IMG/VR virus record: IMGVR_UViG_3300050132_000038
Span: 124,001-188,000 of that record
DNA: 64,000 nt
Strand: one strand, 5' to 3'
Shown: positions 2,980 to 26,307 of the stretch, piece by piece
Position numbering within the stretch: position 1 is the stretch's first letter
Layout of the letters: every line of letters begins with the position of its first letter
The notes under the pieces: generated by a model
Seen by the model: only the letters and a program-made list of their open reading frames with translations
Database searches by the model: none
What the model was told of the DNA's origin: nothing
Position numbers and translations under genes: made by a program

Positions 2980-2997
2980 CCCCATTAGCCTTATTGA

Positions 2998-3368: not shown

Positions 3369-3369
3369 A

Positions 3370-3573: not shown

Positions 3574-3636
3574 TGTGGTGACGAAAGTCTATCGTGATTC
3601 AAATCCAGCTCGGCCTACCAATAACAGAGGAGAGTT

Positions 3637-3894: not shown

Positions 3895-3903
3895 GAGCAC
3901 ATA

Positions 3904-3975: not shown

Positions 3976-3994
3976 CTCAAACTGGAGAACTACC

Positions 3995-4781: not shown

Positions 4782-4820
4782 CCGCACTGACTCCCTAAGC
4801 TCAAACTGGAGTATTAAAGA

Positions 4821-5810: not shown

Positions 5811-5874
5811 CTAACAATTTTATCGTAGGCGCATTATTTAGACTCATCGACAGCTTCACTGAGGAATAAGCACT

Positions 5875-6156: not shown

Positions 6157-6184
6157 CTGATCCATCATACCTGGAGTTGTCGTC

Positions 6185-6553: not shown

Positions 6554-6559
6554 GACAAT

Positions 6560-6595
6560 AAGCCGCCCGACTTCAACAGGTCGAGGCGGCTTTTT
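6560..6595 (+). terminator. Rho-independent terminator
   Basis: AAGCCGCC/GGCGGCTT stem plus T-run. Confidence 0.85.
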
Positions 6596-6642
6596 CGTTT
6601 GTGTCTTGTAAATATAGTCATATACCTTTAAGGTTCCGTTCC

Positions 6643-12032: not shown

Positions 12033-12446
12033 ATGCTTGAAGCAGCATTAGTTAAATACGGAATCATCGGCCTAGCAGTTCTAGCCCTAGTTGGAGCGGC
12101 CTCGGTGTTAGCGTACAACCACGGATACTCCACAGGCTACAAGAGTGGATGGGATGCACAGCAAAAGACAATCGACAAGATGGTTACTGACGAGAACACT
12201 CAGCGCACTGCACAGAATACGGCTATCACTAGCCTGGAGCAGTCCGCTGCCAAAGCAGCCGGTGATGCATTCGCAGCTAAAGCAAAGGCAGCCTTGGTAA
12301 CGACCCAGATCATCACGCAATACAAAACCAAGTATGTGAAGATCGCAGCCTCGTGTGGTTGGTCGATTCCCACAGTTCAAACTATCAACAGCGTGCTCAA
12401 CGCTAATTCACTTGCACAACCAGCAATCGTAGGAGAAGCACAATGA
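12033..12446 (+). CDS. Inner-membrane spanin (Rz-like)
   Basis: N-terminal TM helix plus periplasmic coiled coil; coupled to a lipoprotein gene. Confidence 0.75.
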   Translation: MLEAALVKYGIIGLAVLALVGAASVLAYNHGYSTGYKSGWDAQQKTIDKMVTDENTQRTAQNTAITSLEQSAAKAAGDAFAAKAKAALVTTQIITQYKTKYVKIAASCGWSIPTVQTINSVLNANSLAQPAIVGEAQ

Positions 12447-12781
12447 AAAAGCTAATCATCATTTCATCCTTAGTGTTTTCTGGATGTGCTATTGCTCCGA
12501 AGAACTTACCGAAGCCCCTACCGCTTGTGCACCAAGACCAGACGGTAGTTATTCCTCCGTCACTCCTTGTAGACTGTACTCCATTGACACAACTTGATCC
12601 AACACACACCTACTCGCAAGGTGACTCAGTTACTGTGGCCTCGACGTGGGCAGCAGAACACCAAGACTGTATGCTCCGTTTCCAGAAGCTCCGTGATATA
12701 ACGGCCAAGGCGTTTAATATCAGCATCGACGGGCCTGGAAATACGGTTATTCCGGCGTCTTCGGTGGCAGCTTCAAAGTAG
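12443..12781 (+). CDS. Outer-membrane spanin lipoprotein (Rz1-like)
   Basis: MKK-hydrophobic-FSGC lipobox; Pro-rich mature region. Confidence 0.75.
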   Translation: MKKLIIISSLVFSGCAIAPKNLPKPLPLVHQDQTVVIPPSLLVDCTPLTQLDPTHTYSQGDSVTVASTWAAEHQDCMLRFQKLRDITAKAFNISIDGPGNTVIPASSVAASK

Positions 12782-12851
12782 ATTTACTCCTGTAAATAAC
12801 TAGTGTAGATACAAAGAATAACCCTTCCCAAATTTTCTGTAGAGGATCCTC

Positions 12852-14042
12852 ATGAGTATTTCTAACCTGCTCTCTCTGTTAACCCCCGGCGCTGTGTTTC
12901 TCAACGAGAAAGGCCGCACCGTAAAGTTTTTGATGTTGACCAATATGGACCTTCCGGCAAAGGTTCAGGTTAAGCACCCACCGCAAGTTGTGTATGCAGA
13001 CGACCAAGGTAACTTCTACAATCGTGACGTGGATAACTTCCTGGAATACTACAAGTTCTACAACGTTGATCCGGAATTGGAAGCACGTATTGAAAACCTG
13101 TTGGTGTTCAACGAGGACGACACGGATGAAGTGGAAGAGCCTGCAGAAGGTGAACCGCTGATTCAACTTACTGCAAAGGGGCTGGCAGAGATAGACGCAT
13201 TTGACGCTCGAGATCAGGCGCGTGCCGAACGCTTTGCCGATAAAGTTCAGCAGAGTAATGTTCCGCAAGCTACAACGATTCTTGCCCAAGCCCTGTCTGT
13301 CGAAACGGACGACGGCCTGTTGCTCCCACCGGAGAAAGTAACGGCTACAAAGAAGAAGTCGCCGTTGAAGGTTGAGTTCAGCACAATGAGCAGCACGGAG
13401 CGCACGGTTCCTCTGGTTCTCGATCCGGCCCAGCTTACTGCCTCACTGGTTGCGTATTCGCAGTACCCGGATACTGTACAGAGCATGATTATGCATCGCC
13501 TTACGTTTGCCCTCAGCGAGCAGGTAACTATCAAGGCGTTGCAAGACCTGTTCCAGCCTAACGATCCCGCTAAAGCACAGCGTCACACGATGGACATTGT
13601 GGACGTACACACGACATTGACAGAAGACCGTATTGTTTGGACTTCATACGTTGGTGTATTCCCTGAGTTCCGTATCGATGGTTTGTACGCCACGGTGATC
13701 CTGGGTACGGATGAATTCCGTGATGCAGAACCTGTAGACGAGCTGGCTGGTGACATCACTGATGCGAGCGATTTTATCGCAGCGCTCCGAGCAGAAGCAC
13801 CTGCGGTAGAATTGGACTCAGACCTCCGGGATGCAACCCAACGTGTTATGGACAGCATGAGTACTCAGGTGCAAGGCACGACTATCCATATCAACCCGGA
13901 CAACTTGGTTAGCCAGAATACTACAGCGCAGTTCAATACGGATAGTCTGACCCAGGAGCAGCGGGATACCGTTATTCAGATGACTCCCTCGTCCGAGCAG
14001 TTGTTCGATCAAAGTGGTACGGATGTTCCCGGTGCTCTGTAA
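12852..14042 (+). CDS. Acidic hypothetical protein with N-terminal DUF1653-like domain
   Basis: FLNEKGRTVKFLMLTN...HPPQVVY...FYNRDVDNF resembles the 2998..3198 peptide. Confidence 0.65.
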   Translation: MSISNLLSLLTPGAVFLNEKGRTVKFLMLTNMDLPAKVQVKHPPQVVYADDQGNFYNRDVDNFLEYYKFYNVDPELEARIENLLVFNEDDTDEVEEPAEGEPLIQLTAKGLAEIDAFDARDQARAERFADKVQQSNVPQATTILAQALSVETDDGLLLPPEKVTATKKKSPLKVEFSTMSSTERTVPLVLDPAQLTASLVAYSQYPDTVQSMIMHRLTFALSEQVTIKALQDLFQPNDPAKAQRHTMDIVDVHTTLTEDRIVWTSYVGVFPEFRIDGLYATVILGTDEFRDAEPVDELAGDITDASDFIAALRAEAPAVELDSDLRDATQRVMDSMSTQVQGTTIHINPDNLVSQNTTAQFNTDSLTQEQRDTVIQMTPSSEQLFDQSGTDVPGAL

Positions 14043-14075
14043 AGAAACCACTGGTTAAGACTTAAGTAGTATATG

Positions 14076-14115
14076 AGCCCACCTGAGCTAACTAACGGCT
14101 GGGTGGGCTTTTTTT
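14076..14115 (+). terminator. Rho-independent terminator
   Basis: AGCCCACC/GGTGGGCT stem plus T7. Confidence 0.85.
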
Positions 14116-14152
14116 CATTCCGCCCACCTAGCATCATTGAGGATTTAAGATT

Positions 14153-15178
14153 ATGGAGAAGGGACAGTATGCCATCGGGTTAGCCCGGTCAAACGAAGGT
14201 AAAGCAAAACCCTTCTTATTCAAAGTAACAGGACAGCATAAAGGTATCGTCTCTGGGTTTCTTACTAAGGACTCACACATATCAAGTCTCAAGTCTAGTG
14301 TAGAAGTTCCTATCAAAGACGTTATCATCAACCTTGGTGCAGAACCCTACCCTGGTAAAGTCCATGGCTGTGACTTGAACAACCTGTACACGGGGAAGAA
14401 GCTCCACACTCACTTCGGACAGATTCACTTCTTCTACAAGCCTGCTCCTGAGGTAGGTCAGAACCTCTTCGCTGCACTAGATAAAGTGTACAAGGTGTTA
14501 AAGCAGAATCGGTTAGAGTTCGTCGTCCAGCCTGATACCTGCATGTGGGAAGTGCTACCCTTCCACGGAGAGAAATACGCTGGTATGTACTGTCGATCCA
14601 AGAAGCCGGAGACTAGTCCCCATCGTCTCCAGATTCGCCCGGAGATCATGCCGTCCTCTGACTACCCATACGTTATCTACCATGAGCTCGCGCACCACCT
14701 CCACAAAGAGTTTGCTACAGGTTCCAAGCTTCAAGCCGCATGGATTCAACTATACAGCTCTACCATCAAGGTATCGTCAATCCGTAAGGATCAGTCCACT
14801 GAGATGCTTGAGGCATTGCTTACTCAGGAAGATCCCCCGTCTGCATATAAGAGTGTGCTGAGCGAGGAAGACGCTCAGATCTACAAACTAATATTGAAGA
14901 ACATTCAACAGAATCACCAGATCTCAGTTAAAGAATTGGACCTACTGTTTGAAGCTGACTACCGTGATGACATTCGCAGCGTGTGGCCGACCCGTGGCAT
15001 TGCTAAGAAGGACTTAGCTCCTGTAGTAAGTGAGTACGCCTTGACCAAGTGGACTGAACTTGTGGCAGAGAGCGTGGCCTACAGGCTTACGGGTAAGAAG
15101 CTGCCCAAGGAAGTTGAAGCACTTGTGGACAAGACATTCTCGTATGCCAGATCCAATCACGAGAAGCGGAGCAACTAA
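14153..15178 (+). CDS. Putative zincin-like metallopeptidase
   Basis: HELAH (HExxH) plus distal SEYA...ELVAES. Confidence 0.6.
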   Translation: MEKGQYAIGLARSNEGKAKPFLFKVTGQHKGIVSGFLTKDSHISSLKSSVEVPIKDVIINLGAEPYPGKVHGCDLNNLYTGKKLHTHFGQIHFFYKPAPEVGQNLFAALDKVYKVLKQNRLEFVVQPDTCMWEVLPFHGEKYAGMYCRSKKPETSPHRLQIRPEIMPSSDYPYVIYHELAHHLHKEFATGSKLQAAWIQLYSSTIKVSSIRKDQSTEMLEALLTQEDPPSAYKSVLSEEDAQIYKLILKNIQQNHQISVKELDLLFEADYRDDIRSVWPTRGIAKKDLAPVVSEYALTKWTELVAESVAYRLTGKKLPKEVEALVDKTFSYARSNHEKRSN

Positions 15179-15529: not shown

Positions 15530-16024
15530 ATGGAACAACAGGGCCTCGGCAAGATCACCAAACAGATTTATCGGTCAACGAAGACGTACGGCCACAACGA
15601 AGGTCTCTCCTGCGCCTTCCGTCAGTGGCGTGCAACTCATTCGCACTGTAGCCTCATCCATGGCTATGCCTTGTCATTCAAATTCGTGTTCGCATGTTCT
15701 GTCCTGGATGAGCGCCATTGGGTTCAGGACTTTGGCGCACTAGCTGAACTTAAGGACGGGCTGAAGCAGCACTTCGATCACAAGACAGTAGTTGCGATGG
15801 ACGATCCTCTCCTAGACTCTTTCGAGGAGATGGAGCGTCTGGGACTACTGCGCTTAACCATCCTTCACTCCGTAGGATGTGAGGAGTTTGCCCAATTTGG
15901 ATGGCAACTAGCCAATGCCTTAGTTACTAAAGCTCATCCAGACGGCCGGGTGTGGGTGGAATCCTGTGAAGTTGCAGAGCACGGTGCCAATTCAGCTATC
16001 TATACGGTGGAGCCAGTATTGTAA
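15530..16024 (+). CDS. queD: 6-carboxy-5,6,7,8-tetrahydropterin synthase
   Basis: SHCSLIHGY, DFG, FDHK, GCE, EHGANSA motifs. Confidence 0.9.
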   Translation: MEQQGLGKITKQIYRSTKTYGHNEGLSCAFRQWRATHSHCSLIHGYALSFKFVFACSVLDERHWVQDFGALAELKDGLKQHFDHKTVVAMDDPLLDSFEEMERLGLLRLTILHSVGCEEFAQFGWQLANALVTKAHPDGRVWVESCEVAEHGANSAIYTVEPVL

Positions 16025-16707
16025 TGCGTAAGACAATTGTTTTGATCCAGGGCTTGCCTGGATCTGGTAAGACCACGCTTGCAGATATTCTGTCGGAGAA
16101 GACGGGTGGGGCTCGTGTTAATGCCGACTACGTGCGTAACAATGTCAACACTGATCTGGGATTTTCTCCAGAGGATCGTATTACCCAAGCACATCGCATG
16201 GGGAAGATTGCTAACATTGCACTATCAGGGGCAAACGATTTAGCCATCGTAGACTTTGTGTGCCCCACACCTGCTACACGTAAAGCGTTCAAGCAGGCAA
16301 CCGACTATCGCATCTTCAATGTATGGATGGACACTATTCAAATCGGTCGCTTTGAGGATACCAATAAGCTTTACGTAGGTCCCCAAGACGTGGACTACAA
16401 GGTTGAGATCTATCTGTCGGAAGAGGGCTTCCACAAGATCGCTGAGGACATAGCGTTTCAACTTGCCCTTGCTAGTAATCGAAAGACTAAACGCTATTAC
16501 CTGCGTTACAACACCTTGGTAGGGGACACTGATCTTCGCTGGCGAGTTATAGACGCTGACACCAAAGAGGAGCAGTTAGCAAAGAGCTTTAGAGTGGACG
16601 GCCTTACACTATTCCCCGCATCTTCAATAGAGCATGGGGTAGTCAAGTGGAATGTGGCAGTTGATGGTCAAGCTGTCTGGACTGATAACTCTGTATTTTT
16701 CAAGTGA
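16024..16707 (+). CDS. Adenylylsulfate (APS) kinase-like P-loop kinase with extra C-terminal domain
   Basis: GLPGSGKTT; NADYVR...DLGFSPEDR (APS kinase signature region); VDFVCP. Confidence 0.75.
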   Translation: MRKTIVLIQGLPGSGKTTLADILSEKTGGARVNADYVRNNVNTDLGFSPEDRITQAHRMGKIANIALSGANDLAIVDFVCPTPATRKAFKQATDYRIFNVWMDTIQIGRFEDTNKLYVGPQDVDYKVEIYLSEEGFHKIAEDIAFQLALASNRKTKRYYLRYNTLVGDTDLRWRVIDADTKEEQLAKSFRVDGLTLFPASSIEHGVVKWNVAVDGQAVWTDNSVFFK

Positions 16708-17546
16708 CCATGAAAATTCATATCGTTAGTCTACAACGCTCAGGCTCTAAGAGTCTGTACAACTCTATCCACAGTGCACTAAATAAGCCCCTCACATTCT
16801 CTAACGGAGACTCGTTGGGCGAGTATCTGCACTGCTGGTCGGAGTACGGCTACAAGTTTAGCTTTAGCGCTACGAAACCCTTCGATCCTACGGCCTGCAT
16901 ACTGTTTAGGACTCACCCAGAGTTTGGGGGCTACGTGGGTTCCAATTTCACGCCTGCCTACCATCAAGGTGTGCTCAGTTGGAAACCCACAGATTACAAA
17001 GAAGTCCTTAGCTACGCAGACATAGAGCACCGCCTAAAGGCGATCCACCTTAGCCGTAGTTTGGTGGTAAAGACCCAGCTTGCCTCACTCCTCGAGGAGT
17101 TCGACCCTGCACAGCGTGTATGTATTAAGAATGCCGTGTTGGATCCGAGCCTATTCAACCGAACCATATTCTTGGTTCCTGATGATCTCGAACGCTGGCT
17201 ATGCTCGAATTATCTGTGCGACCATTCAGGCGTGTTTGTACAGTGCAAGTCTCAGGCGGAGGCAGCGGCTGCTTTCAAGGCAACCCCTGTTACGATTCCC
17301 ACTGAATACTTAGACTTGTTGAGCTCTAGGTATCGAGTACATAAAAATCTTGCGTGTGGGGCTGATGGGTTAGTAATCCACACGTCTGCCCTTACTAGTG
17401 AAAGTACCCGTACGCTACTTGAGTTTACTCTCGGTATAAAAGTACACGTTAAAGACGAAAAGGAATTCTCCGCCTTTGACTACTCAACCATGATTAAGAA
17501 TTACGACGGGGTTATCCATGCGGCAGATCAGTTACGACGAGCTTAA
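16704..17546 (+). CDS. Sulfotransferase-like protein (Stf0-type P-loop fold)
   Basis: N-terminal IVSLQRSGSKSL 5'-PSB-like loop; GEY; VVK; IFL..D.L...S; C-terminal Y...IKNYD. Confidence 0.55.
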   Translation: MTMKIHIVSLQRSGSKSLYNSIHSALNKPLTFSNGDSLGEYLHCWSEYGYKFSFSATKPFDPTACILFRTHPEFGGYVGSNFTPAYHQGVLSWKPTDYKEVLSYADIEHRLKAIHLSRSLVVKTQLASLLEEFDPAQRVCIKNAVLDPSLFNRTIFLVPDDLERWLCSNYLCDHSGVFVQCKSQAEAAAAFKATPVTIPTEYLDLLSSRYRVHKNLACGADGLVIHTSALTSESTRTLLEFTLGIKVHVKDEKEFSAFDYSTMIKNYDGVIHAADQLRRA

Positions 17547-18003
17547 GATCATTGCGAAGAACGTGGCAAAGAGTATTTCTACGAAGGGCGGTACTTATAG
17601 GCTAGTAGCAGTAGCTCGTGGTGGACTAACCTTTGCCCAACTAGTGTCCTACTACTTGTCAAAGCCCCTAGAATTCTTTATCCCCGCATACTCAGAGATG
17701 ACTGGTAGTGACTATTGGGAAATGTACACCCACTTCATTTTTCTTGAGGACGTCATTGCAGAAGGTCGTACCTTCCGTATCATCGACGACTATGTTACCC
17801 GCCAGGGGTTACCTAGCTGGGAAATGATACCTGTGGTCCTGGATAGTAACGCCCCTGCCGATATACAGGACCGTGTAAATACATATGGAATGAAGACGTC
17901 CGACTGGATTGTGTTTCCCCATGAAGACGTTGCACACACAGTTGAAGGCGATCGTGGATTGTTCCGCGCTGGCACGTCTGCAAATTCCAACCCTATCATT
18001 TAA
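17518..18003 (+). CDS. Type I phosphoribosyltransferase (Gpt/Hpt-like)
   Basis: VAVARGGL; PRPP loop FIFLEDVIAEGRT; C-terminal WIVFPHE. Confidence 0.8.
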   Translation: MRQISYDELKIIAKNVAKSISTKGGTYRLVAVARGGLTFAQLVSYYLSKPLEFFIPAYSEMTGSDYWEMYTHFIFLEDVIAEGRTFRIIDDYVTRQGLPSWEMIPVVLDSNAPADIQDRVNTYGMKTSDWIVFPHEDVAHTVEGDRGLFRAGTSANSNPII

Positions 18004-18007
18004 GACC

Positions 18008-18778
18008 ATGAAGATCCTTATCTTATTCAGTGGTGGGCTCGATAGCCTTATTATGAAACGCTACGCAGAGGTTAACTACCCAGACGCTGAGGTAGTCTGT
18101 GCGTTCTACGATATTGGACAGGAGTACAATCATAAAGAGGTTGCAGCTCTCCCACCATTCGTTGAACAGTTAACGTTGGACTGGCTTACACCAAACGTCG
18201 AAGCCCAGAGTAAAGATGGCTCGGACTCGGGTAACATCTATATTCCTGGTCGCAACCTTGTTCTTGCAGTTGCCGCAGCCTGCAAGTACCTACCGGATCA
18301 AGTTTGGCTCGGTGCCCTGCTCGGTGAAGTACACGAGAGTGCTACCGATAAGAACTGGAAGTTCCTGGATCAAGCAAGTGACACGCTATCCTACGTGTTG
18401 TCTCCGTTCAAGCCTAACGGTGTACAGGTTAAGTTCCCCTTAGCTAACGCTGGATTCAACAAGCTGACGGCCACCAAGTGGGCATTAGACAATGGCGTTC
18501 CAGTTGAGGCAATCCTGAAATCTAGCTCCTGTCTATCTGGTGAGCACGGTAACTGCGGCAAGTGTGTAGTGTGCTTTAGACGTTGGGGAATCTTCAAACA
18601 ACTCGGAATACCCGAAGAACAGTACAATGTTCATCCCTTAGAATCTACAGAGAATGAATTGATAGCAGCCGAGATGCTGCTTGGAACTTATTACGATGAA
18701 CACCGCATCCAAGAAATTGTCCCCGCCCTCCCCGACTGGTACAAAGAAAAAGTTATCGAAAAGTACAGAACAAAATAA
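18008..18778 (+). CDS. queC: 7-cyano-7-deazaguanine synthase
   Basis: ILFSGGLDS PP-loop; YIPGRN; SSC...CGKCVVC zinc site; start at ATG 18008. Confidence 0.9.
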   Translation: MKILILFSGGLDSLIMKRYAEVNYPDAEVVCAFYDIGQEYNHKEVAALPPFVEQLTLDWLTPNVEAQSKDGSDSGNIYIPGRNLVLAVAAACKYLPDQVWLGALLGEVHESATDKNWKFLDQASDTLSYVLSPFKPNGVQVKFPLANAGFNKLTATKWALDNGVPVEAILKSSSCLSGEHGNCGKCVVCFRRWGIFKQLGIPEEQYNVHPLESTENELIAAEMLLGTYYDEHRIQEIVPALPDWYKEKVIEKYRTK

Positions 18779-20177
18779 GGTTGAAATCCTTCCTGCATCC
18801 GTTAACAGTCTGGCATTGAATGAGTTCATTGGCGTTAAGTACGGTCGGCCCAAACAGAAGGTATGGACTGCAGAACGTGTTAAGGGATTGTTCACGATCT
18901 ATCTACCTGATCGTACCGTTATGATAGGCCGTGGTAACTCAAACACGCTAGGCATTACCACTGAGGATCTGGACTCGTACTTCATGACCTCCCCAATGTC
19001 GAATCCCTCTATGCTGAAAGCTATTGGGTACAAGTACATGATGGTGACACCAGAGCGTCAGGCCACTTCGGATTACATGCGCCGGAATGGTATCATCAAG
19101 GTGTTCAGTGACTCCGGTGGGTTCCAGATGTCCAAGGGTGTTACTGAGTTCGTAGACCCCGACTTCGTTGCTTCCTTTTACAAGCAGCGTATAGACTACG
19201 GCATTGGCCTGGATGTACCACTGCCCAAGCATCTGCAGAACACCGATTGGTTCATGCGTATGTGTGACGTGCAGATCGCGAACAACAAGTACATCGCTGA
19301 ACGTCTTAAAGGTAGCCCCTGTGAATTGTATGATGTTAGCCATGGTCTTACACTAGAGAATAGAAAGCGATTCACTCACAAGGTGCTGGATAACAAAGTA
19401 GGTGTTGGCCTATCGCTAGGTGGTATTGGTCAAGCCAACTATGATACGTTGCACACGTCTACTATCATGGCCGTGCTTAATCTATGCTACGTACTGGACG
19501 CGTCAAAGGGCGTGTACGATAGATTCCACGTGCTGGGTACTACAGCCCCCTTCATGATCTCGGCGTATCACATCTTAACCGCGCTAGGAGTAGCTCCTTT
19601 CATTAGTGCGGATTCTTCGACGTACGCGCAGACCGGCCTAGCTATGAATACCAGGGGTACCATTTACCATAATGGGGCTGCCACTATCCCAAGCTTTCCT
19701 TTGGAGGATGAACACGTGTCCTATGGACTCCCTTGCTCCTGCCCGGTGTGTAGTATTGCTGGCTATCCGCAGGTGTATAGGTTGTCTGGCCCAGCTAATG
19801 GTATCCATACTCTGCACATAATGTATAAGTTGTCTGAAGTGGTTGGGGAGTACACTAAGCAGATGCTAGAGGGTCGTCCTACGCTAGAGCACCTACTTAC
19901 CCTAGTGGCTCCAAATAAATCCCAGTATCCAGTGTATCGCGCCCTCTACAAATTCTTGTTGTCGATGGACAAGGGCTTTAACAAGGCATGGGCTCTGCAT
20001 AAGGATTTCCTGCAACCGTATCTCCGCAAATCTAAGGAAGCTGACGGCCTGTTTAGTGCGTACTCTAAAATGCCAGAAGCTTTGAAGAAGGCGGAAGAGA
20101 ACACTACTAAGGCTATCTTGAGGTACGAGAAATTCCACGGCATTGGTCCTCAGGTAAAGACGAAGGGGAAGAAGTAA
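18681..20177 (+). CDS. dpdA: TGT-family transglycosylase, DpdA-like (start uncertain, 18681 or 18696)
   Basis: DSGGFQ, GLDVP, HVLG, SADSST catalytic motifs; CSCPVC...H zinc site; lies among que genes. Confidence 0.75.
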   Translation: MELITMNTASKKLSPPSPTGTKKKLSKSTEQNKVEILPASVNSLALNEFIGVKYGRPKQKVWTAERVKGLFTIYLPDRTVMIGRGNSNTLGITTEDLDSYFMTSPMSNPSMLKAIGYKYMMVTPERQATSDYMRRNGIIKVFSDSGGFQMSKGVTEFVDPDFVASFYKQRIDYGIGLDVPLPKHLQNTDWFMRMCDVQIANNKYIAERLKGSPCELYDVSHGLTLENRKRFTHKVLDNKVGVGLSLGGIGQANYDTLHTSTIMAVLNLCYVLDASKGVYDRFHVLGTTAPFMISAYHILTALGVAPFISADSSTYAQTGLAMNTRGTIYHNGAATIPSFPLEDEHVSYGLPCSCPVCSIAGYPQVYRLSGPANGIHTLHIMYKLSEVVGEYTKQMLEGRPTLEHLLTLVAPNKSQYPVYRALYKFLLSMDKGFNKAWALHKDFLQPYLRKSKEADGLFSAYSKMPEALKKAEENTTKAILRYEKFHGIGPQVKTKGKK

Positions 20178-20617
20178 TGCGTGAACTGAAATACATAGAC
20201 TTAGAGAACGTATACGGCTATCCCTCGTTATCTCCTACCTTTATCAAGTGGCTGAAAGCTCGTGGTAACGTTCAACTTGTTATAGCCTTACACAACTTGG
20301 AAAAGGTTGAGCGCACAAAAGAGTTCATCATAGTGGTAACTGGGCTACCTTATCTGGAGTCGTGTGGTGTACCCATCTTAGGGTATAACTGCACTGAGGT
20401 AGGTCTGTGGCATCGAGGTGATCTTCCAACTAAGTTGAGACCTAATAAGGTACACATCTTACTCCCCAAGTTCCAAGGGGAGATGGCGGACACAAAGACT
20501 CTATACAACTTGTATGTAAATGATGTTATGAGCGAAACTTTCAGTCCTCGCTTCACTACGTACCATACCACGGAATGCTTGAACGACCGAGTATTCCGTC
20601 ACAAGAGAAAGACATGA
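20177..20617 (+). CDS. Hypothetical protein in the deazaguanine cluster
   Basis: Coupled to the DpdA-like gene (TAATG) and queE (ATGA). Confidence 0.6.
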   Translation: MRELKYIDLENVYGYPSLSPTFIKWLKARGNVQLVIALHNLEKVERTKEFIIVVTGLPYLESCGVPILGYNCTEVGLWHRGDLPTKLRPNKVHILLPKFQGEMADTKTLYNLYVNDVMSETFSPRFTTYHTTECLNDRVFRHKRKT

Positions 20618-21414
20618 TTCCAATTATCCAGCACCGCGACAAGGCTATAACTCCAGCGAAGTATAAGCCATTCAAGGACAACCTACTTATAACTTCCGTG
20701 TTCCGCACGATTCAGTCCGAAGGTCCGTTCTCAGGTCACCCAGCGGTATTCGTCCGTACCGCTGGTTGTAACTTCGGAGCAAAAGATCCCAAAGGAATGT
20801 GCTCGTGGTGTGACACGGCCTTCGAGTTCGACAAAGGCTTACTGTACTCGCCTGAGAAGCTCCTAGAGGTTGTGCTGACCTTGCCTGGGTATAACTCTAA
20901 GGACATCTTGGTATTAACTGGTGGGGAGCCTACCCTCCAGCATAACCTGATTAAGTTCATGGAGATCGCGCAGCCTTGCTTCCGGGCTATTCAGATTGAG
21001 ACTAACGGGACACAACCCTCATTCTTCTTGGCACTCCTCAGTACTCAGGTACACCTCCCCCATGTAGTAGTGAGTCCTAAGGCATCGTCTACGACAGGGA
21101 CGTATCCAATGATCTCAGACAGAGTTCTAGGTGCGACTCGAGCACTCAAGTTTGTAGTCACGGCAGACCCTAGTGATCCGCAGCACGTAGTTCCTGAGTG
21201 GGCATTTAGGAATCAACACTATGGATACGAGCTTTACGTCTCCCCGATGGCTATATACAAACGAGCTTACGACGGTGAAGTATCCAACGCCTGGGACCCA
21301 ACGCTGATCGACCAAGAAGCAACCGCCCGCAACTATGCCTATGCTGCAAAGTACGCAATGGAACATAACTGCTTGCTTTCAATCCAGGGTCATCTCTTCA
21401 CGGCAGTTCCCTGA
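20614..21414 (+). CDS. queE: 7-carboxy-7-deazaguanine synthase (radical SAM)
   Basis: TIQSEGPFSG.PAVFVR; C-x10-C-x2-C; LTGGEP; IETNG; SPK. Confidence 0.9.
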   Translation: MIPIIQHRDKAITPAKYKPFKDNLLITSVFRTIQSEGPFSGHPAVFVRTAGCNFGAKDPKGMCSWCDTAFEFDKGLLYSPEKLLEVVLTLPGYNSKDILVLTGGEPTLQHNLIKFMEIAQPCFRAIQIETNGTQPSFFLALLSTQVHLPHVVVSPKASSTTGTYPMISDRVLGATRALKFVVTADPSDPQHVVPEWAFRNQHYGYELYVSPMAIYKRAYDGEVSNAWDPTLIDQEATARNYAYAAKYAMEHNCLLSIQGHLFTAVP

Positions 21415-21421
21415 GGCTGAT

Positions 21422-21751
21422 ATGCGCAAATTTCTGGTTACGGCTGATGGCAACGAGTATGAGTTGAGCCCACTCACGCAAGAAGAATTCACAAAAATCA
21501 ATCTGTGGTGCGGCGGTGACGATATGGCATTCGATGCTTGGCTGCGTGCCAACCGCCTGCATGAACTAGACAGCTTTCGTAGCGAAGTACTTCAGCAAAG
21601 CGTTATTGAGATGCGCAACGAAACTGTCGACCTCCTGTTCGATCCGTCGGGTGAGAATTTCATTCCCTATTCCGAAGTTCGCGCACAGTCCATTTCCTCT
21701 CAGACGTTTCAGAACAAACTCAACCAACAGCTCAGGGATGCGTACTCATGA
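21422..21751 (+). CDS. Hypothetical protein
   Basis: GAGG RBS before ATG 21422. Confidence 0.55.
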   Translation: MRKFLVTADGNEYELSPLTQEEFTKINLWCGGDDMAFDAWLRANRLHELDSFRSEVLQQSVIEMRNETVDLLFDPSGENFIPYSEVRAQSISSQTFQNKLNQQLRDAYS

Positions 21752-22071
21752 ACCCAAAGTGCAAAGTATGCGGTACACCGATGCCCTTGCGAGATGGTAA
21801 GTTTGGGCCTTTCTATTTCTGCCCTAGGTCGAAAGGATTCGTTAAGCACGGGACAATAACTAAAGCAGCCTACGACGCTCAACTTACTGCAGGTCTTGCT
21901 AAGGTATATAAACGAGACACAGAAGATCAGCAGATGGTGGATCATTTCAAGCGGGTAGAAGCCGCGGGTGCTGGCTCACTGTCGTCCTCAGTAATAGATT
22001 TCTATGTAGACCACTCACTGTCTTCCGATGAGAGCGATCCTGAGTGGGATAACATTTTACCTCTAGGTTAG
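21748..22071 (+). CDS. Protein with topoisomerase C4-type zinc-ribbon N-terminus
   Basis: CKVCGTPMPLRDGKFGPFYFC. Confidence 0.6.
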   Translation: MNPKCKVCGTPMPLRDGKFGPFYFCPRSKGFVKHGTITKAAYDAQLTAGLAKVYKRDTEDQQMVDHFKRVEAAGAGSLSSSVIDFYVDHSLSSDESDPEWDNILPLG

Positions 22072-22074
22072 ATT

Positions 22075-22728
22075 ATGACTTATTCAAAAGATAAAGATGT
22101 AGGTTTCGCAGTTCACCAGCACCTTGTAGAAGTTGGTGTTGAAACCCCGTTCACTCAGAAGAAGATCGACAAGACAAATCTTGAATATCTGTTCACCCAG
22201 ATCATGCGTGAGGTCGGGCTTGATCTAAAGGATGATTCTCTGAACGAGACCCCGCGCCGTCTTGCTAAGCTGTACTCAGACGAGTACTTCTACGGCCTGG
22301 ACTACAATAACTTTCCCAAGGCTACCGTAGTAGCGAACAAGTTTAACTATGACGAGATGCTTATCGAGCGTAACGTTAAAGTTAACTCGCTGTGCGAACA
22401 TCATTTTTTAAGTATCCTAGGTGGTGCCTTCATTGCATACATTCCCGAGAAGAAAGTATTAGGCTTGTCTAAGCTCAACCGCATTGTGGACTTCTTCTGC
22501 CGGCGTCCTCAGATTCAAGAGCGACTTACTGCCCAGATCTATCACGCACTATCCTTCCTTCTTGAGACAGAGAACGTTGCCGTGGTTATTGAAGCGGAGC
22601 ACCTCTGTGTCAAGACCCGCGGTATTATGGACGCGTGCTCGGATACCGTTACCTCGCAGTTAGGCGGCTCATTCAGGATTCCTGAGGTGCGTGCTGAGTT
22701 CATCTCCTTGTCTAAGGGGCTACGATGA
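22075..22728 (+). CDS. folE: GTP cyclohydrolase I
   Basis: ETPRR; SLCEHH; GLSKLNR; RRPQIQERLT; HLC. Confidence 0.95.
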   Translation: MTYSKDKDVGFAVHQHLVEVGVETPFTQKKIDKTNLEYLFTQIMREVGLDLKDDSLNETPRRLAKLYSDEYFYGLDYNNFPKATVVANKFNYDEMLIERNVKVNSLCEHHFLSILGGAFIAYIPEKKVLGLSKLNRIVDFFCRRPQIQERLTAQIYHALSFLLETENVAVVIEAEHLCVKTRGIMDACSDTVTSQLGGSFRIPEVRAEFISLSKGLR

Positions 22729-22965: not shown

Positions 22966-23433
22966 ATGGGTCGCCGTAATCTCGTAGTCTTCGATATAGA
23001 TGGTGTACTTATGGACTCAGAGCATCGCCTACCTCATATGCTGGCAGGTGACTTCCCTAAGTACTTCAAGATGTGGCAGTACGATACACCTCTACCCCCA
23101 GGTATTGCAGTGTGCAAAATGTTTATTGCTAATCCTGAGTACCGTGTGATCTTCTGTACAGGAAGAAGCGACACGCTTGTGCACAGGATTGGTACCCTAA
23201 CTCAGTTGCAAAACAATATTAGCCCCAAGATCCGTGACTCGCAACTGTTAATGCGGGAGTATCCAGAGGTTGGTCCTCACCTGCACGATACAGTGAAGAA
23301 GCCGTTGATGATTGAACAGGCAGGCTACTCACTCGATAACATCTTCATGGTATTTGAAGACCGGAATTCAATAGTAGATATGTGGAGGGAACGGGGTATT
23401 ACTGTCTATCATACACAGGACGGAGATTTCTAA
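22966..23433 (+). CDS. HAD-superfamily phosphatase (polynucleotide kinase/phosphatase-like domain)
   Basis: VVFDIDGVL; CTGR; FEDR...VDMWR. Confidence 0.8.
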   Translation: MGRRNLVVFDIDGVLMDSEHRLPHMLAGDFPKYFKMWQYDTPLPPGIAVCKMFIANPEYRVIFCTGRSDTLVHRIGTLTQLQNNISPKIRDSQLLMREYPEVGPHLHDTVKKPLMIEQAGYSLDNIFMVFEDRNSIVDMWRERGITVYHTQDGDF

Positions 23434-23943
23434 ATGAAAGCTGTCGACATAAACAAAGGGAGTTGGCACTTCTGGTTGGCCTCCCAGGTTAGCTGGAAGC
23501 AGACCTACTACAGTAACAAACTTTGTAAGCGAGTACCTACTGACTTCTGTTACTATGTGCGCCGAGTCATCCTAGGATTTATTTGGGTAGCTATCTTAGC
23601 TTCAGTTGCACTAGCTCTAGCTGGTCTCTACCTGTACTCTGGGTACTACACAGTACAGTGGGTGCTAGATATGATCCACCAGGGTAAGTTCTTCCAAGGT
23701 CCAGGTGAGGCTGGCCCCTTCCTATTCATCACCAGCATGACCTTGGCCGTAGGTATAGCACTAGGTGTTATATTGTGTATCGCTCAAGCACTAAAGTGGC
23801 GTGATACTAGGTGCTATTTGGCACGAGAGCTTGCTCGTAGTAGAGCTGAGCCAACACTCCTTCTTAAAGAACCCTCCTTCGTACAAGTTGCGTATCGTTC
23901 TATCAAAGACAAAGTGTGTTTCCGTATTAACATCGTGGAGTAA
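23434..23943 (+). CDS. Membrane protein
   Basis: Two long hydrophobic segments. Confidence 0.65.
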   Translation: MKAVDINKGSWHFWLASQVSWKQTYYSNKLCKRVPTDFCYYVRRVILGFIWVAILASVALALAGLYLYSGYYTVQWVLDMIHQGKFFQGPGEAGPFLFITSMTLAVGIALGVILCIAQALKWRDTRCYLARELARSRAEPTLLLKEPSFVQVAYRSIKDKVCFRINIVE

Positions 23944-23947
23944 GACA

Positions 23948-24856
23948 TTGGACAATAAACTATTCACCGGCAAGCAGTGCTCCGTTACAATTATCGAAGA
24001 CTCAGTGTCGCAGTTGACTCGTAAGAGACTGACTACCCTGCAGTTGCGCTACTGGCGTGCTGTACACTCGGAGTTCATGACGCACCGGATGTTCTCCCGT
24101 AACGCTAGTTCGAGCCGTGCTATTCCTACTGAGAGGTTGCTTTATCAAGTTGAGGAATTTCCTGCGTGTCCTGTACACTGGGGTAAGAACGAGTCAGGTA
24201 TGCAGGCGCGCGAAGAGCACAATGAGTTGGTGAAGCACCCTGTAACCGGAGAGTTCATGTCCCGCGAGGAAGCCTGGCGAGAAGCTTCTCGCAGCTCTAG
24301 TGCCTGGGCTCGTACCTTCGCTGATGCTGGTTATCATAAGCAAATCGTTAACCGCTTGGTTGAGCCTGCGTCCTTCATCTCTGTTGTAGTGACTGCGAGT
24401 GAGTGGGATAACTTCTTTGCCTTGCGTGACCACGAGGACGCACAGCCTGAGATTCAAGACTTAGCACGAACCATGAAGAAGGCAATGGATGCTTCTTCGG
24501 CGCGTGTTATTCATCCGGGTAAGCTTAGTGACCCTCGCACTTGGCATCTCCCCTACATTCAGATGTACGAGCGCCAGGCTTATACCGTTCCTCAGCTTCT
24601 CGGAATGTCTGCTGCACGTAATGCTCGGGTATCCTACCTGACTCACGACAATCAGAACCCGAAGATCGAAAATGACATTGGGTTGTATCGTCGTCTGGTG
24701 GAGTCGAAGCCCTTGCATGCTTCACCCTTGGAGCACCAAGCGTACTGTTCTGCATCCAAGGAACCCTCGGCTAACTTCACCGGTGGTTGGATTCAGCATC
24801 GTCGCTTGCTGGAAAACGCAGGGTCGATTGACAACCTAGCAGTAGCTCTTAAGTAA
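23948..24856 (+). CDS. thyX: Flavin-dependent thymidylate synthase
   Basis: EFMTHRMFSRNASSSRAIP; FFALR; HASPLEH; start set at TTG 23948. Confidence 0.88.
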   Translation: MDNKLFTGKQCSVTIIEDSVSQLTRKRLTTLQLRYWRAVHSEFMTHRMFSRNASSSRAIPTERLLYQVEEFPACPVHWGKNESGMQAREEHNELVKHPVTGEFMSREEAWREASRSSSAWARTFADAGYHKQIVNRLVEPASFISVVVTASEWDNFFALRDHEDAQPEIQDLARTMKKAMDASSARVIHPGKLSDPRTWHLPYIQMYERQAYTVPQLLGMSAARNARVSYLTHDNQNPKIENDIGLYRRLVESKPLHASPLEHQAYCSASKEPSANFTGGWIQHRRLLENAGSIDNLAVALK

Positions 24857-25338: not shown

Positions 25339-26307
25339 ATGAGTTACCAGCACAGCAAAAGCTTTGAACAGCTAAAGGGCATCAACGAGTCGATCACCGG
25401 GAACCTTACTAGTCTGCAGTACCTACAGACTTTGGATATGTTTCTGTGGCGTGCTCTGGAACCTATTCACTCTGAGTGCCCCTCGCTGTTCAACAACTAT
25501 CTGGCTAAGGTGGTTGCGCACCAATCACTAAGAGCCTCAACCAAGTTTAGCTCAGATGACAGGACGAAGTTGCCTATCCTGTTGTTCAACCTGTTGTCTG
25601 AGCCGGACCCGAAGAAAGCACACGAGCATGCCAAGTCTATGCACATTAATCGTGGCATACTCTTCGGCTTCATCTCCATGTTCCTTAACAAGCTAAAGTA
25701 CTACGAAACGCTTAACTCCCCCTTCGTAGAGCTTGATGGTGTTTTCCGTAAGTCAGAGATGTATCGTATCGAGCAGGAGATGGGCTTACGCACAGGTGGT
25801 TCCCTCTACGCAGCAATGCAGCAGGTTCGCTACTGGGACGAGAAGGCTCGTGACTTCAAAGGTAAGATAATCCAGAAGTACACGCGCATGGCCCTGTTAA
25901 ACGCTAAGGCGGCCTATGCAGATTACAACCACTACGTTAAGCTAGACGACGTGGTACAAGTATATCTTATGATCGTCTCCAAGGCCATTGATCGCTGCGA
26001 TGCACGCCAGGGAGTACTTACTACCTTCATTCAGAGTTGGTTCAAGAGTGCCAAGTCGGAAGTCGCAAACATGGCTAAGGGTCAACTAGATCAATCCTAT
26101 GAAGCCTTATCAGAAGAACATGGTGATGCAGTCTCCGATATTATCGGATTCTCGTTACCCGATACAACCTCAGAGCTAGAGCAGCATATCTCATACGTTG
26201 CGAAGCAGATGGATCGACAAGGGTACATTAGAGCAGCCTTGCATATTCCTGAGTTCATGACGTTGGATCAGAAAGCTATTCTAGAACGCCACGCAGTGAG
26301 GAGCTAG
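25339..26307 (+). CDS. Phage sigma-70-like factor (region 2)
   Basis: LDDVVQ...KAIDRCDARQGVLTTFIQSWFK matches the sigma region 2.2-2.4 pattern; no clear region 4. Confidence 0.65.
   Translation: MSYQHSKSFEQLKGINESITGNLTSLQYLQTLDMFLWRALEPIHSECPSLFNNYLAKVVAHQSLRASTKFSSDDRTKLPILLFNLLSEPDPKKAHEHAKSMHINRGILFGFISMFLNKLKYYETLNSPFVELDGVFRKSEMYRIEQEMGLRTGGSLYAAMQQVRYWDEKARDFKGKIIQKYTRMALLNAKAAYADYNHYVKLDDVVQVYLMIVSKAIDRCDARQGVLTTFIQSWFKSAKSEVANMAKGQLDQSYEALSEEHGDAVSDIIGFSLPDTTSELEQHISYVAKQMDRQGYIRAALHIPEFMTLDQKAILERHAVRS

Follow-up and report, generated by a model that had tools for sequence, protein, structure and literature searches.

A jumbo-phage 7-deazaguanine gene cluster that includes a predicted sulfotransferase and a transglycosylase with a predicted protein partner

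Which modified base does an uncultured jumbo phage make with a set of 7-deazaguanine synthesis genes, and does it carry that base in its DNA? We addressed this question in a 64,000-nucleotide stretch (hereafter the window; positions 124,001 to 188,000 of the IMG/VR record IMGVR_UViG_3300050132_000038) of a 218,861-bp phage genome. An initial annotation, made from the sequence alone, had claimed that this locus encodes a complete preQ0 pathway and a TGT/DpdA-like enzyme, without queF or an amidotransferase, and that the default product is dPreQ0 in DNA unless the interspersed genes tailor it. The observation was confirmed, since all five named genes are present on the + strand (Table 1), whereas the interpretation was only partly supported: the reading as a phage 7-deazaguanine cluster with a base-exchanging enzyme holds, but the default product and the label DpdA do not find support.

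Table 1. Features of the deazaguanine locus, with window coordinates and the sequence matches supporting each assignment.
Position	Strand	Assignment	Sequence matches
15530-16024	+	QueD (6-carboxytetrahydropterin synthase family)	PF01242 E 3e-11; phrog_2389 E 1e-37
16024-16707	+	APS (adenylyl-sulfate) kinase-like protein, roughly 80-aa C-terminal extension	PF01583 E 2e-15; TIGR00455 E 4e-13 (below the equivalog cut-off); PDB APS kinases E 1e-7
16710-17546	+	Stf0-like sulfotransferase (predicted)	no Pfam, PHROG or NCBIfam hit
17518-18003	+	Gpt-like purine phosphoribosyltransferase (PRT), conserved C-terminal extension	NF006613 (xanthine PRT) E 4e-6 over 134 of 159 positions, below cut-off; PF00156 E 4e-4
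18008-18778	+	Divergent QueC-family PP-loop enzyme (QueC-like)	PF06508 E 6e-12, above the Pfam cut-off; TIGR00364 41 bits against an equivalog cut-off of 150
18696-20177	+	TGT-superfamily transglycosylase, jumbo-phage clade (catalytic subunit); ORF opens at TTG 18681, first ATG at 18696	no Pfam or PHROG hit; TgtA TIGR00432 E 1.6e-4 (20 bits against the 350-bit equivalog cut-off); PDB 1iq8 ArcTGT E 3e-4; PADLOC DpdA E 0.02 over 55 residues only
20177-20617	+	146-aa conserved, predicted partner of the transglycosylase	no hit to any PADLOC, Pfam or NCBIfam model
20575-21414	+	QueE (7-carboxy-7-deazaguanine synthase, radical SAM)	phrog_2076 E 2e-35; five QueE NCBIfam models E 1e-13 to 1e-16 (below equivalog cut-offs); PF04055
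21422-21751	+	Small ORF	no family hit; no homologue in any related locus at E 1e-4
21748-22071	+	Small ORF	no family hit; homologue only in L003, at 38% identity
22075-22728	+	FolE (GTP cyclohydrolase I)	PF01227 E 9e-57
22966-23433	+	HAD phosphatase of the PNKP 3'-phosphatase type, possibly associated	PF25109 E 3e-16

The absence of queF and of an amidotransferase holds for the complete genome at Pfam sensitivity: the searches returned no Asn_synthase, no DUF5591/ArcS, no class-I GATase and no second TGT, and QueF gave only a sub-threshold echo inside FolE. The claim of a complete preQ0 pathway, however, assumes that the QueC-family protein is a nitrile synthase. This protein belongs to a divergent QueC subfamily in which the PP-loop and the four zinc cysteines are invariant, but which has internal deletions and a roughly 60-aa C-terminal extension. 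It is 61-71% identical to its counterparts in those loci of related phages (designated L001 and so on) that carry the PRT, only 24% identical to the canonical QueC of L004, and it gave no BLAST hit to the QueC of Achromobacter phage Motura. As this subfamily co-varies with the accessory genes, preQ0 as the end point is not shown. QueD orthologues occur in all related loci, at 41-73% identity.

The catalytic motifs of the transglycosylase proved to be real. Across 29 clade members, down to 23% identity, the Asp of the DSGGFQ motif (D144), D178, D311 and the zinc ligands C352/C354/C357/H376 are invariant, and they align with the catalytic and zinc residues of the archaeosine TGT 1iq8. The label DpdA was not supported, as the protein matches none of the DpdA family models (Pfam, PADLOC) and none of the three DpdA references tried, namely those of 9g (DpdA1), Dp-1 (DpdA2) and phiST (DpdA3). 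Neither does it match the Tgt model or reach the TgtA cut-off. It forms its own jumbo-phage clade, and the nearest named structures are archaeal TGT families (TM 0.54), with Pfam DpdA weaker.

This enzyme is predicted to bind the 146-aa protein encoded directly downstream of it, in the window and in L001, L003, L004, L007, L008, L009, L018, L020 and L021. The predicted complex had an ipSAE of 0.85, against 0.00 for the best control, a mark reached by 58 of 80 solved complexes and by 2 of 110 mismatched pairs; the runs share at least 51% of contacts and the partner pLDDT is at least 81. The predicted contacts involve a clade-specific N-terminal extension of the transglycosylase of about 130 aa. 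The AF2 model of the partner (pLDDT 85.2) had no significant PDB match (Foldseek E above 1; VIA-align Z at most 3.2). The two other small ORFs of the cluster are unlikely to be core genes, being not conserved among relatives.

Is DNA the likely substrate? The cluster sits in the replication module, among PolA, primase, ThyX-like and RecA-like genes, and the genome has a single tRNA, Gln-UUG, which is not a queuosine-type tRNA. Furthermore, the genome has no RNR, MazG or HD nucleotidase (dGTPase) that could build a modified dNTP pool or clear dGTP. A tRNA substrate, which the initial annotation had left open, is made less likely by this context but is not excluded.

Turning to the interspersed genes, the guesses of a kinase and a sulfotransferase made in the initial annotation were right. 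Alignment of the kinase with E. coli CysC showed that it keeps the P-loop, the Asp and Arg of the DGD..VR segment, and the DLGFS..DR signature. It is also 43% identical over its full length to ORF238 of Ralstonia phage phiRSL1. In the relative L009, CysD (242 bits, above cut-off) and a fragment of CysN (its G-domain) sit directly downstream of the kinase, which points to PAPS supply. The sulfotransferase was identified from its AF2 model (pLDDT 85.7), for which the top Foldseek hits were the Stf0 trehalose sulfotransferase 1tex (prob 1.00, E 5e-5), followed by heparan 3-OST and NST. Searches of the ESM Atlas found Stf0/Sulfotransfer_3 clusters at 0.96-0.97 by features and TM 0.57-0.60 by structure, and the protein has a conserved N-terminal RSGS-type loop. 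The structural match remains moderate (TM 0.44-0.48; 12% identity to Stf0). Alignment of the PRT with E. coli Gpt showed that it keeps R37-G38-G39, D89, G94, T96, W134 and P138. It is homologous to the PRT of phiST, and a related small PRT is found in the phage groups reported to replace all their guanine (phiST, CP220, immuto; PMC10516641).

The APS kinase, the sulfotransferase, the PRT and the QueC-like gene form a block that is present together in the window and in L003, L007, L009, L018, L070 and L072. The contigs of P0012 and P0016 show the same gene order, judged by Pfam hits and gene sizes, and L019 shows the same block on a short contig, with QueD lying between the kinase and the sulfotransferase. 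In every locus fetched that holds a homologue of the sulfotransferase, it is embedded among Que genes. The block is not indivisible, since the PRT/QueC-like pair also occurs without a sulfotransferase in L020, L035 and L071. At the same position, L008 carries a kinase/nucleotidyltransferase plus a glycosyltransferase and has no QueC, L020 carries DUF2264, L004 carries an ArcS-like gene and Motura carries AsnB. L008 and L020 nest inside the sulfation clade on the transglycosylase tree (97/95), whereas the sister clade has canonical QueC plus ArcS-like or AsnB-like genes. The HAD phosphatase gene lies inside the Que cluster in L003 and L007, but it is also present in L008, L021 and BCSR5, which lack the sulfation genes. 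The joint presence or absence of the block, and its replacement by other gene sets in related phages, argue that it belongs to the pathway, and dPreQ0 as the default product is thus weakened and not supported.

From these lines of evidence, we propose, with moderate confidence, that the locus is a DNA 7-deazaguanine hypermodification island. The conversion of GTP into 7-carboxy-7-deazaguanine (CDG) by FolE, QueD and QueE is established chemistry; the steps that follow are inferred, for an uncultured phage, from sequence, predicted structure and gene context alone. First, the divergent QueC paralogue would activate the carboxylate, to give the amide ADG and possibly the nitrile preQ0. Second, a two-subunit transglycosylase, made of the 493-aa catalytic subunit and its 146-aa partner, would exchange guanine in phage DNA for the deazaguanine base. 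Third, the APS kinase would make PAPS from host APS, and the Stf0-like sulfotransferase would transfer sulfate to a pathway intermediate or to the inserted base, so that the final mark is probably a new, possibly sulfated or otherwise further derivatised, 7-deazaguanine rather than plain dPreQ0. None of CDG, ADG or preQ0 offers an obvious hydroxyl for a carbohydrate-type sulfotransferase, and the link between sulfation genes and deazaguanine rests on conserved adjacency and co-variation within one phage lineage, at a site that could be a cargo hotspot. Fourth, the PRT would couple a purine base to PRPP, either to recapture the excised guanine as GMP, thereby removing a competitor of the exchange and refilling the GTP consumed by FolE, or to make the deazapurine ribonucleotide, as TubE does. 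We regard these two options as about equally likely, the sequence not separating them, though a PRT acting on the free deazapurine would compete with the transglycosylase for its substrate. The likely role of the system is the protection of phage DNA from restriction and other DNA-targeting defences, and the interchangeable tailoring blocks fit diversification under an arms race.

The best surviving alternative, which we consider unlikely, is that of the initial annotation: FolE, QueD, QueE and QueC make preQ0, the transglycosylase inserts it into DNA, the PRT only salvages guanine, and the APS kinase and sulfotransferase are unrelated cargo, for example for the sulfation of a host or virion glycan. 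This view is consistent with the PP-loop and zinc cysteines kept by the QueC-like protein, with the lack of QueF, amidotransferase and ArcS in the genome, and with the position between QueD and QueC or the transglycosylase, which is clearly a swap site. In addition, phiRSL1 carries the same kinase next to glycosyltransferases and a sulfotransferase, with no Que genes in the roughly 10.7-kb stretch examined. Against it stand the constant embedding of the sulfotransferase among Que genes in the loci fetched, the co-variation of the QueC subfamily with the PRT and its difference from the canonical QueC of the sister clade, and the fact that the sister-clade genes at the same position are recognised deazaguanine tailoring enzymes (an ArcS-like domain, an AsnB-type amidotransferase).

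Slightly less likely still is a nucleotide-level route, in which the PRT, like TubE/ToyH, converts CDG or preQ0 plus PRPP to a deazapurine ribonucleotide, on which the QueC-like enzyme possibly acts. The product would then be either reduced and polymerised into DNA (pre-replicative substitution), or dephosphorylated and sulfated on the ribose to give a soluble sulfated 7-deazaguanosine, the transglycosylase playing a secondary role. In favor of this route, TubE is a CDG-specific PRPP transferase encoded beside FolE/QueD/QueE homologues (PMC6112128); the PRT/QueC-like pair is adjacent in three unrelated phage backgrounds (the window's clade, L035 and L071); the nearest structural relatives of the sulfotransferase act on sugars, and a ribose would supply hydroxyls; a HAD 3'-phosphatase-type gene is nearby; PRT homologues occur in all the complete-replacement phages; and ADG nucleoside was reported in CP220-infected cells (PMC10516641). 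However, the genome lacks a ribonucleotide reductase, MazG and HD dGTPase, the transglycosylase and its partner are strictly conserved with intact catalytic residues, a sulfated ribose cannot be part of a DNA backbone, and no function for a soluble product is apparent.

Finally, an archaeosine- or queuosine-like modification of host or phage tRNA by the transglycosylase, to adjust translation, is very unlikely, although only context argues for DNA, the best sequence and structure matches are tRNA enzymes and the motifs alone cannot tell the substrates apart, because all scores are far below family cut-offs, no PUA or C-terminal tRNA-binding domain was detected, the phage has a single tRNA, the gene lies in the replication module and is paired with a phage-specific partner, and every tested phage carrying its own deazaguanine synthesis genes plus a transglycosylase is reported to modify DNA (PMC10516641).

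How does this locus compare with known systems? Similarly to the phage 7-deazaguanine DNA modification systems (DpdA1-4 with FolE/QueD/QueE/QueC plus or minus QueF, Gat-QueC, ArcS, DpdL/M/N; PMC10516641), it associates a phage-encoded FolE-QueD-QueE-QueC set with a TGT-superfamily enzyme and variable tailoring genes, with the protection of DNA from restriction as the expected role. It differs in that its transglycosylase is not detectably similar to the DpdA references and models mentioned above, is about 180 residues longer and has a predicted obligate partner. The APS kinase, sulfotransferase and PRT do not appear in the text of that paper, and full-text searches of the open literature linking sulfotransferases with deazaguanine or with hypermodified phage DNA found nothing relevant. 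The closest isolates are Motura and related jumbo phages. Motura shares the transglycosylase clade (33% identity over 94% of the query), the partner gene and the synteny (primase ... QueC-x-TGT-partner-QueE-x-FolE ... sigma-like, SSB, RecA), but has a canonical QueC and an AsnB-type amidotransferase where the window has the kinase, sulfotransferase, PRT and QueC-like genes.

Archaeosine tRNA-guanine transglycosylase (TgtA/ArcTGT, PDB 1iq8) is the best sequence match and the nearest named fold, with the same catalytic Asp motifs and an identical CxCxxC zinc knuckle followed by a His; yet the similarity is weak, no C1/C2/PUA tRNA-binding domains were detected in the phage protein, and its N-terminal extension is predicted to contact a phage-specific partner. 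The bacterial Dpd system (DpdA with DpdB; DpdC for ADG) comprises, as is predicted here, a DNA transglycosylase that needs a second protein, with preQ0-derived marks, but the PADLOC DpdA match is marginal and the 146-aa partner has neither a family hit nor a convincing structural match. The tubercidin and toyocamycin pathways similarly cluster FolE/QueD/QueE genes with a small purine PRT (TubE/ToyH), but they make soluble nucleosides, lack any transglycosylase, and carry a GMP reductase and a UbiD decarboxylase or nitrile hydratase, none of which was seen here. Lastly, as in the PAPS-dependent carbohydrate sulfotransferases (Stf0) with CysC/CysDN supply and in the phiRSL1 ORF238 region, where the same kinase is paired with an annotated sulfotransferase, a predicted sulfotransferase fold with an N-terminal PAPS-loop motif is encoded next to an APS kinase, with CysD and CysN in one relative; the context, however, is nucleobase biosynthesis rather than glycan synthesis.

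The record from which the window is drawn has terminal repeats, a length of 218,861 bp, an estimated completeness of 100%, a G+C content of 48% and a 127-bp exact terminal repeat, and it corresponds to a jumbo phage for which a nucleotide search of the cluster against GenBank phages returned no match. The region of interest lies in the replication module, and the + strand between 15530 and 23433 is a tight array of often overlapping genes, which were identified by HMM scans (see the table). The observation made in the initial annotation is confirmed, as the transglycosylase motifs it reported are real and the absence of queF and amidotransferase genes holds. Indeed, whole-genome family searches at Pfam sensitivity found no QueF (only a sub-threshold echo inside FolE), no second TGT, no Asn-synthase-type (Gat-QueC or AsnB) or class-I amidotransferase and no ArcS domain, so that the complete preQ1, G+ and ADG-amidotransferase routes are absent from the genome at this sensitivity.

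Coordinates of the genes of the window and of the features of other loci discussed in the text (a blank strand means that none was recorded).
Sequence	Coordinates	Strand	Feature
Window	6601-9726		Family-A DNA polymerase
Window	10999-12009		Primase
Window	15530-16024	+	QueD
Window	16024-16707	+	APS-kinase-like protein
Window	16710-17546	+	280-aa protein without family hit, predicted sulfotransferase
Window	17518-18003	+	161-aa protein, weak xanthine/guanine PRT match
Window	18008-18778	+	QueC-family protein
Window	18696-20177	+	493-aa TGT-superfamily transglycosylase
Window	20177-20617	+	146-aa protein, predicted partner of the transglycosylase
Window	20575-21414	+	QueE
Window	21422-21751	+	Small protein without assigned identity
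Window	21748-22071	+	Small protein without assigned identity
Window	22075-22728	+	FolE
Window	22966-23433	+	PNKP-type HAD phosphatase
Window	23801-24856		Long ThyX-like protein
Window	25339-26307		Sigma-like gene
Window	28642-30219		RecA-like gene
Whole genome (G000:C1), outside the window	64348-64422		tRNA-Gln(UUG), the single tRNA gene of the 219-kb genome
L006 (Ralstonia phage phiRSL1)	5001-10663		ORF238-232, kinase homologue heading a second sulfation cluster
L008 (closest relative by flanking genes)	4099-6990		AAA_28/nucleotidyltransferase fusion, 171-aa protein, GT-B glycosyltransferase and 119-aa protein
L009 (related locus)	3626-4959		CysD and 170-aa CysN G-domain fragment
L011 (Cellulophaga phage phiST)	28218-28646		Small Gpt-like PRT
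NC_027997 (phage CP220)	163878-164249		Small Gpt-like PRT
NC_055915 (phage immuto 2-6A)	31952-32287		Small Gpt-like PRT
NC_019507 (phage CP21)	77992-78372		Small Gpt-like PRT
L012 (Vibrio phage GR7B)	4605-6657		Remote transglycosylase homologue followed by a gene of about 150 aa
L013 (Pseudomonas phage Voja-6)	6160-7954		Remote transglycosylase homologue followed by a gene of about 150 aa
L018 (related locus)	12168-13094 and 13955-14974		308-aa protein and GIY-YIG (LEM-3-type) homing-endonuclease-like gene
L020 (IMG/VR relative)	7334-8563		DUF2264 protein (PF10022, E 4e-58)
L071 (contig with T4-type sliding-clamp and ClpP genes)	2089-5212		441-aa protein, 136-aa protein, PRT and QueC-like gene

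The 493-aa protein has the catalytic machinery of the TGT superfamily, since the Asp of the DSGGFQ block (D144), a second Asp (D178), the nucleophile Asp (D311) and the Cys3His zinc site (C352, C354, C357 and H376) are invariant in an alignment of 29 sequences reaching down to 23% identity, and the HMMER alignment places them on the catalytic and zinc residues of the archaeal enzyme ArcTGT (PDB 1iq8). However, it could not be assigned to any of the families tried, as shown by the following lines of evidence. First, no Pfam hit of any kind was obtained at E <= 0.01, which disfavours the bacterial DpdA family (PF23859), DpdA4 (DUF6610, PF20314; compared through this model only) and the bacterial Tgt family (PF01702). 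Second, the PADLOC DpdA model (PDLC02807) gave an E value of only 0.02 (11.7 bits) over 55 residues (126-179). Third, PF01702 matched nothing in the whole genome at E <= 1, whereas all 14 control genomes matched, and the hhalign comparison of the clade profile with E. coli Tgt gave a probability of 6.4%, limited to the zinc region. Fourth, the only sequence hits were to archaeal TgtA (TIGR00432, E 1.6e-4, 20.3 bits against an equivalog cut-off of 350) and to ArcTGT 1iq8 (E 3e-4), and no C-terminal PUA or TGT_C domain was reported. Fifth, the hhalign probabilities were 3.5% against phage 9g gp03 (DpdA1), 0.9% against Dp-1 gp07 (DpdA2) and 0.2% against the 259-aa phiST protein CGPG_00065 (DpdA3; BLASTP E 0.28), and phmmer searches with the DpdA1 and DpdA2 references at E 1e-3 found only each other, a short DSS-type motif around the nucleophile Asp being all that is shared with 9g. 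These profile comparisons with single references are uninformative beyond showing remoteness, the references being too remote to align with confidence. By language-model features and by the Atlas model, through which the structural comparison was made, the nearest neighbours of the transglycosylase are viral clusters; the first named folds are archaeal TGT families (TM 0.54 by query and 0.68 by hit), a Pfam DpdA (PF23859) cluster being weaker (0.49 and 0.58).

The sequence relatives of the transglycosylase are about 35 metagenomic proteins, together with proteins from large-genome isolates of roughly 195-260 kb, namely Achromobacter phage Motura (33% identity), Burkholderia BCSR5, and Xanthomonas, Erwinia, Pseudomonas putida and Vibrio phages. 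A scan of IMG/VR with the single protein returned nothing, and a scan with the clade profile returned only two close loci plus remote TGT-like proteins. In the remote clade members of Vibrio phage GR7B and Pseudomonas phage Voja-6, no Que genes occur in the 10-13 kb examined, so that these phages may use host-made bases, or the enzyme may have another role.

A protein of about 150 aa is encoded directly downstream of the transglycosylase in the window and in nine related loci. Its AF2 model is confident (pLDDT 85), but no PDB match was convincing (Foldseek E above 1; VIA-align Z at most 3.2, with weak P-loop-like rows). A controlled complex prediction supports its binding to the transglycosylase, with an ipSAE of 0.85 as compared to 0.00 for the best of three controls, a mark which was reached by 58 of 80 solved complexes and 2 of 110 mismatched pairs, although these counts hold only roughly because our own alignments were used. 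The runs share at least 51% of contacts, the partner pLDDT is at least 81, and the predicted interface uses the clade-specific N-terminal extension (residues 46-134) and a patch beside the zinc site. From this prediction, which is not a measurement, we treat the inserting enzyme as a likely heterodimer.

The genes interspersed in the cluster are not fillers. In an alignment with E. coli CysC, the kinase keeps the P-loop, the Asp and Arg of the DGD..VR segment and the DLGFS..DR signature, whereas its lid and C-terminal part differ; PF01583 gave 57.6 bits (cut-off 21.1) and TIGR00455 gave 49 bits (equivalog cut-off 138.7). The QueC-family protein has an invariant PP-loop (SGGxDS) and four invariant zinc cysteines, and scored 45.9 bits with its Pfam model (cut-off 22) but 41 bits with TIGR00364 (equivalog cut-off 150). 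It belongs to a distinct subfamily with internal deletions and a C-terminal extension, which is 61-71% identical among the loci carrying the block described below, but only 24% identical to the canonical QueC of L004, a locus of the sister clade.

The 280-aa protein has the predicted fold of a PAPS-dependent sulfotransferase, with a match of moderate strength and no HMM-level match. The Atlas found Stf0 and Sulfotransfer_3 clusters at 0.96-0.97 by features and at TM 0.57-0.60 by structure, and an independent AF2 model (pLDDT 85.7) had the Stf0 trehalose sulfotransferase 1tex as its top Foldseek hit (prob 1.00, E 5e-5, TM 0.44-0.48), followed by heparan 3-O- and N-sulfotransferases. An N-terminal RSGS-type loop, of the kind expected to bind the 5'-phosphosulfate, is conserved. 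The 161-aa protein has the motifs of a type I purine phosphoribosyltransferase of the Gpt type, since residues R37, G38 and G39 (pyrophosphate loop), D89, G94 and T96 (PRPP motif), W134 (base-stacking Trp) and P138 of E. coli Gpt are invariant in 9 sequences, while NF006613 gave E 4e-6, below its cut-off. Searches of phages by tblastn with the sulfotransferase and with the PRT returned no match.

Comparative genomics ties these genes to the pathway. In seven loci (the window and the related loci L003, L007, L009, L018, L070 and L072), the gene order is QueD, APS kinase, sulfotransferase, PRT, QueC-like and then the transglycosylase where the contig reaches that far; the contigs of P0012 and P0016 show the same order by Pfam hits and gene sizes, whereas in L019 QueD sits between the kinase and the sulfotransferase. 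In every locus fetched that holds a homologue of the sulfotransferase, it lies among Que genes. In L009, a phage-encoded CysD (242 bits, above the NCBIfam cut-off) and the CysN G-domain fragment are inserted between the kinase and the sulfotransferase and form, together with the kinase, a full sulfate-activation set, which is what a PAPS supply line looks like. It should be borne in mind that adjacency within one lineage can mislead, as phiRSL1 carries a full-length homologue of the kinase (43% identity) at the head of a run of glycosyltransferases, nucleotidyltransferases and an annotated galactose-3-O-sulfotransferase, i.e., in a glycan-type jumbo-phage sulfation cluster whose target is not established. 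In addition, the 308-aa protein and the homing-endonuclease-like gene of L018 are inserted between the partner gene, QueE and FolE, showing that mobile elements invade the cluster.

Other phages carry different genes at the same position. L008, which is up to 82% identical to the window in its flanking genes, has the four genes listed in the table, the first of which is a kinase/nucleotidyltransferase fusion, in place of the kinase, sulfotransferase, PRT and QueC-like genes; as it has no QueC, its pathway should stop at CDG, with a possible glycosylated derivative. L020 carries a weak kinase, the DUF2264 protein (in the sulfotransferase position), the PRT and the QueC-like gene, and its 263-aa protein was considered as a diverged sulfotransferase, but no such similarity was detectable. 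L004 carries an ArcS-like DUF5591 protein, a second QueD and a canonical QueC, and Motura carries a canonical QueC and an AsnB-type amidotransferase and lacks the block. On a maximum-likelihood tree of the transglycosylase, the sulfation loci plus L008 and L020 form a supported clade (97/95), whose sister clade is Motura plus L004 (100/100). The glycosyltransferase and DUF2264 versions therefore look like replacements of an ancestral sulfation block. The genes at this site in the sister clade are recognised deazaguanine tailoring enzymes, which is the main reason to read the kinase/sulfotransferase block as tailoring too. As for the genes that follow the cluster, the HAD phosphatase lies inside the Que cluster in L003 and L007, and relatives carry ThyA-like or ThyX-like genes at varying positions.

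The PRT/QueC-like pair also occurs without a sulfotransferase, beside a PF01702-positive TGT in the locus L035 (the PRT of which gave no match by tblastn), and in L071, where the accompanying 441-aa protein has a DSGG motif but no CxCxxC zinc motif and matched none of the references. Similarly to the window, Cellulophaga phage phiST, which carries DpdA3 and is reported to replace 100% of its G with dDG, encodes a 142-aa PRT with the same motifs. A tblastn search with this protein found homologues in the phiST group, the Campylobacter CP220/CP21/CPt10 group and the Flavobacterium immuto phages, which are the (DpdA3) phages reported to replace guanine completely (PMC10516641), as well as in a few other phages. 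The text of the paper that defines DpdA3 (PMC10516641, 2023) never mentions a phosphoribosyltransferase, and literature searches found no paper linking PRTs with phage deazaguanine systems.

Two roles fit the PRT, and we rate them about equal. In the first, the PRT would recapture guanine: each exchange releases one guanine and each deazaguanine costs one GTP, so that making GMP from the released base removes a competitor and closes the loop. In the second, the PRT could act on CDG or preQ0, as shown for TubE in the tubercidin pathway (PMC6112128). The absence of RNR, MazG and HD enzymes from the window's genome and the strict conservation of the transglycosylase both favour post-replicative exchange here, whereas the tight PRT/QueC-like linkage favours the TubE-like option.

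From these data we propose the following pathway, in which everything about function in this uncultured phage is inference. The conversion of GTP to CDG by FolE, QueD and QueE is an established pathway, and its genes are present. The conversion of CDG to ADG or preQ0 by the QueC-like enzyme, including any nitrile formation, is inferred and its end point is uncertain, and base exchange into DNA by the transglycosylase/partner pair is inferred from motifs, context and the behaviour of other phage systems. For PAPS formation and sulfate transfer, the enzyme classes are supported by sequence, fold and the CysDN neighbour, but the activity is inferred, the candidate acceptors being the 7-substituent of the inserted base, an exocyclic nitrogen, or a ribosyl unit made by the PRT. 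Likewise, the class of the PRT is supported, but its use of guanine or a deazapurine is inferred. Among the alternatives, amide-to-nitrile dehydration through O-sulfonation as the job of the sulfotransferase is chemically possible but needless if QueC is intact, and is kept only as a remote option. The HAD phosphatase as a dedicated PAP phosphatase of the sulfation block is not supported, because it is also present in relatives lacking the block. The kinase as a 5-hydroxymethyl-pyrimidine DNA kinase, as in thymidine hypermodification, was dropped because it keeps the CysC APS signature and one relative encodes CysD/CysN beside it, and no aGPT-type transferase was seen.

A further-reaching reading, which we regard as unlikely on present evidence although it is not excluded, is that the phage writes a sulfate-bearing 7-deazaguanine into its DNA, which would be the first sulfated DNA base, by means of a previously unclassified heterodimeric DNA transglycosylase and its own PAPS supply. 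In this view, the small Gpt-like PRT shared with the complete-replacement phages (phiST, CP220, immuto) would be a general, overlooked component, which would either close a guanine to GTP to deazaguanine loop or reveal a nucleotide-level (pre-replicative) branch of deazaguanine DNA synthesis. If the accessory block is part of the pathway, three consequences follow. First, a new chemical class is added to phage DNA hypermodification, namely a negatively charged, bulky group in the major groove, which bears on restriction evasion, on modification-dependent nucleases, and on the sequencing and enzymatic handling of DNA. Second, the pattern at the swap site (sulfation block, glycosyltransferase block, DUF2264, ArcS-like, AsnB) across otherwise syntenic jumbo phages gives a compact natural series for studying how tailoring chemistry diversifies around a fixed inserting enzyme. 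Third, the recurrence of a small PRT in the phages that replace all their guanine makes it directly testable whether complete replacement is post-replicative, with guanine recycling, or pre-replicative.

Searches of the open literature found nothing linking sulfation or sulfotransferases to deazaguanine DNA or to phage DNA hypermodification. Eight 7-deazaguanine DNA marks and five DpdA subfamilies are described in the cited work (PMC10516641), none of which involves sulfate, PRPP or a two-subunit inserting enzyme. The system described here belongs with the phage 7-deazaguanine DNA modification systems, but differs from them in three respects: a new transglycosylase clade with a predicted partner, a QueC subfamily linked to a PRT, and a PAPS/sulfotransferase block.
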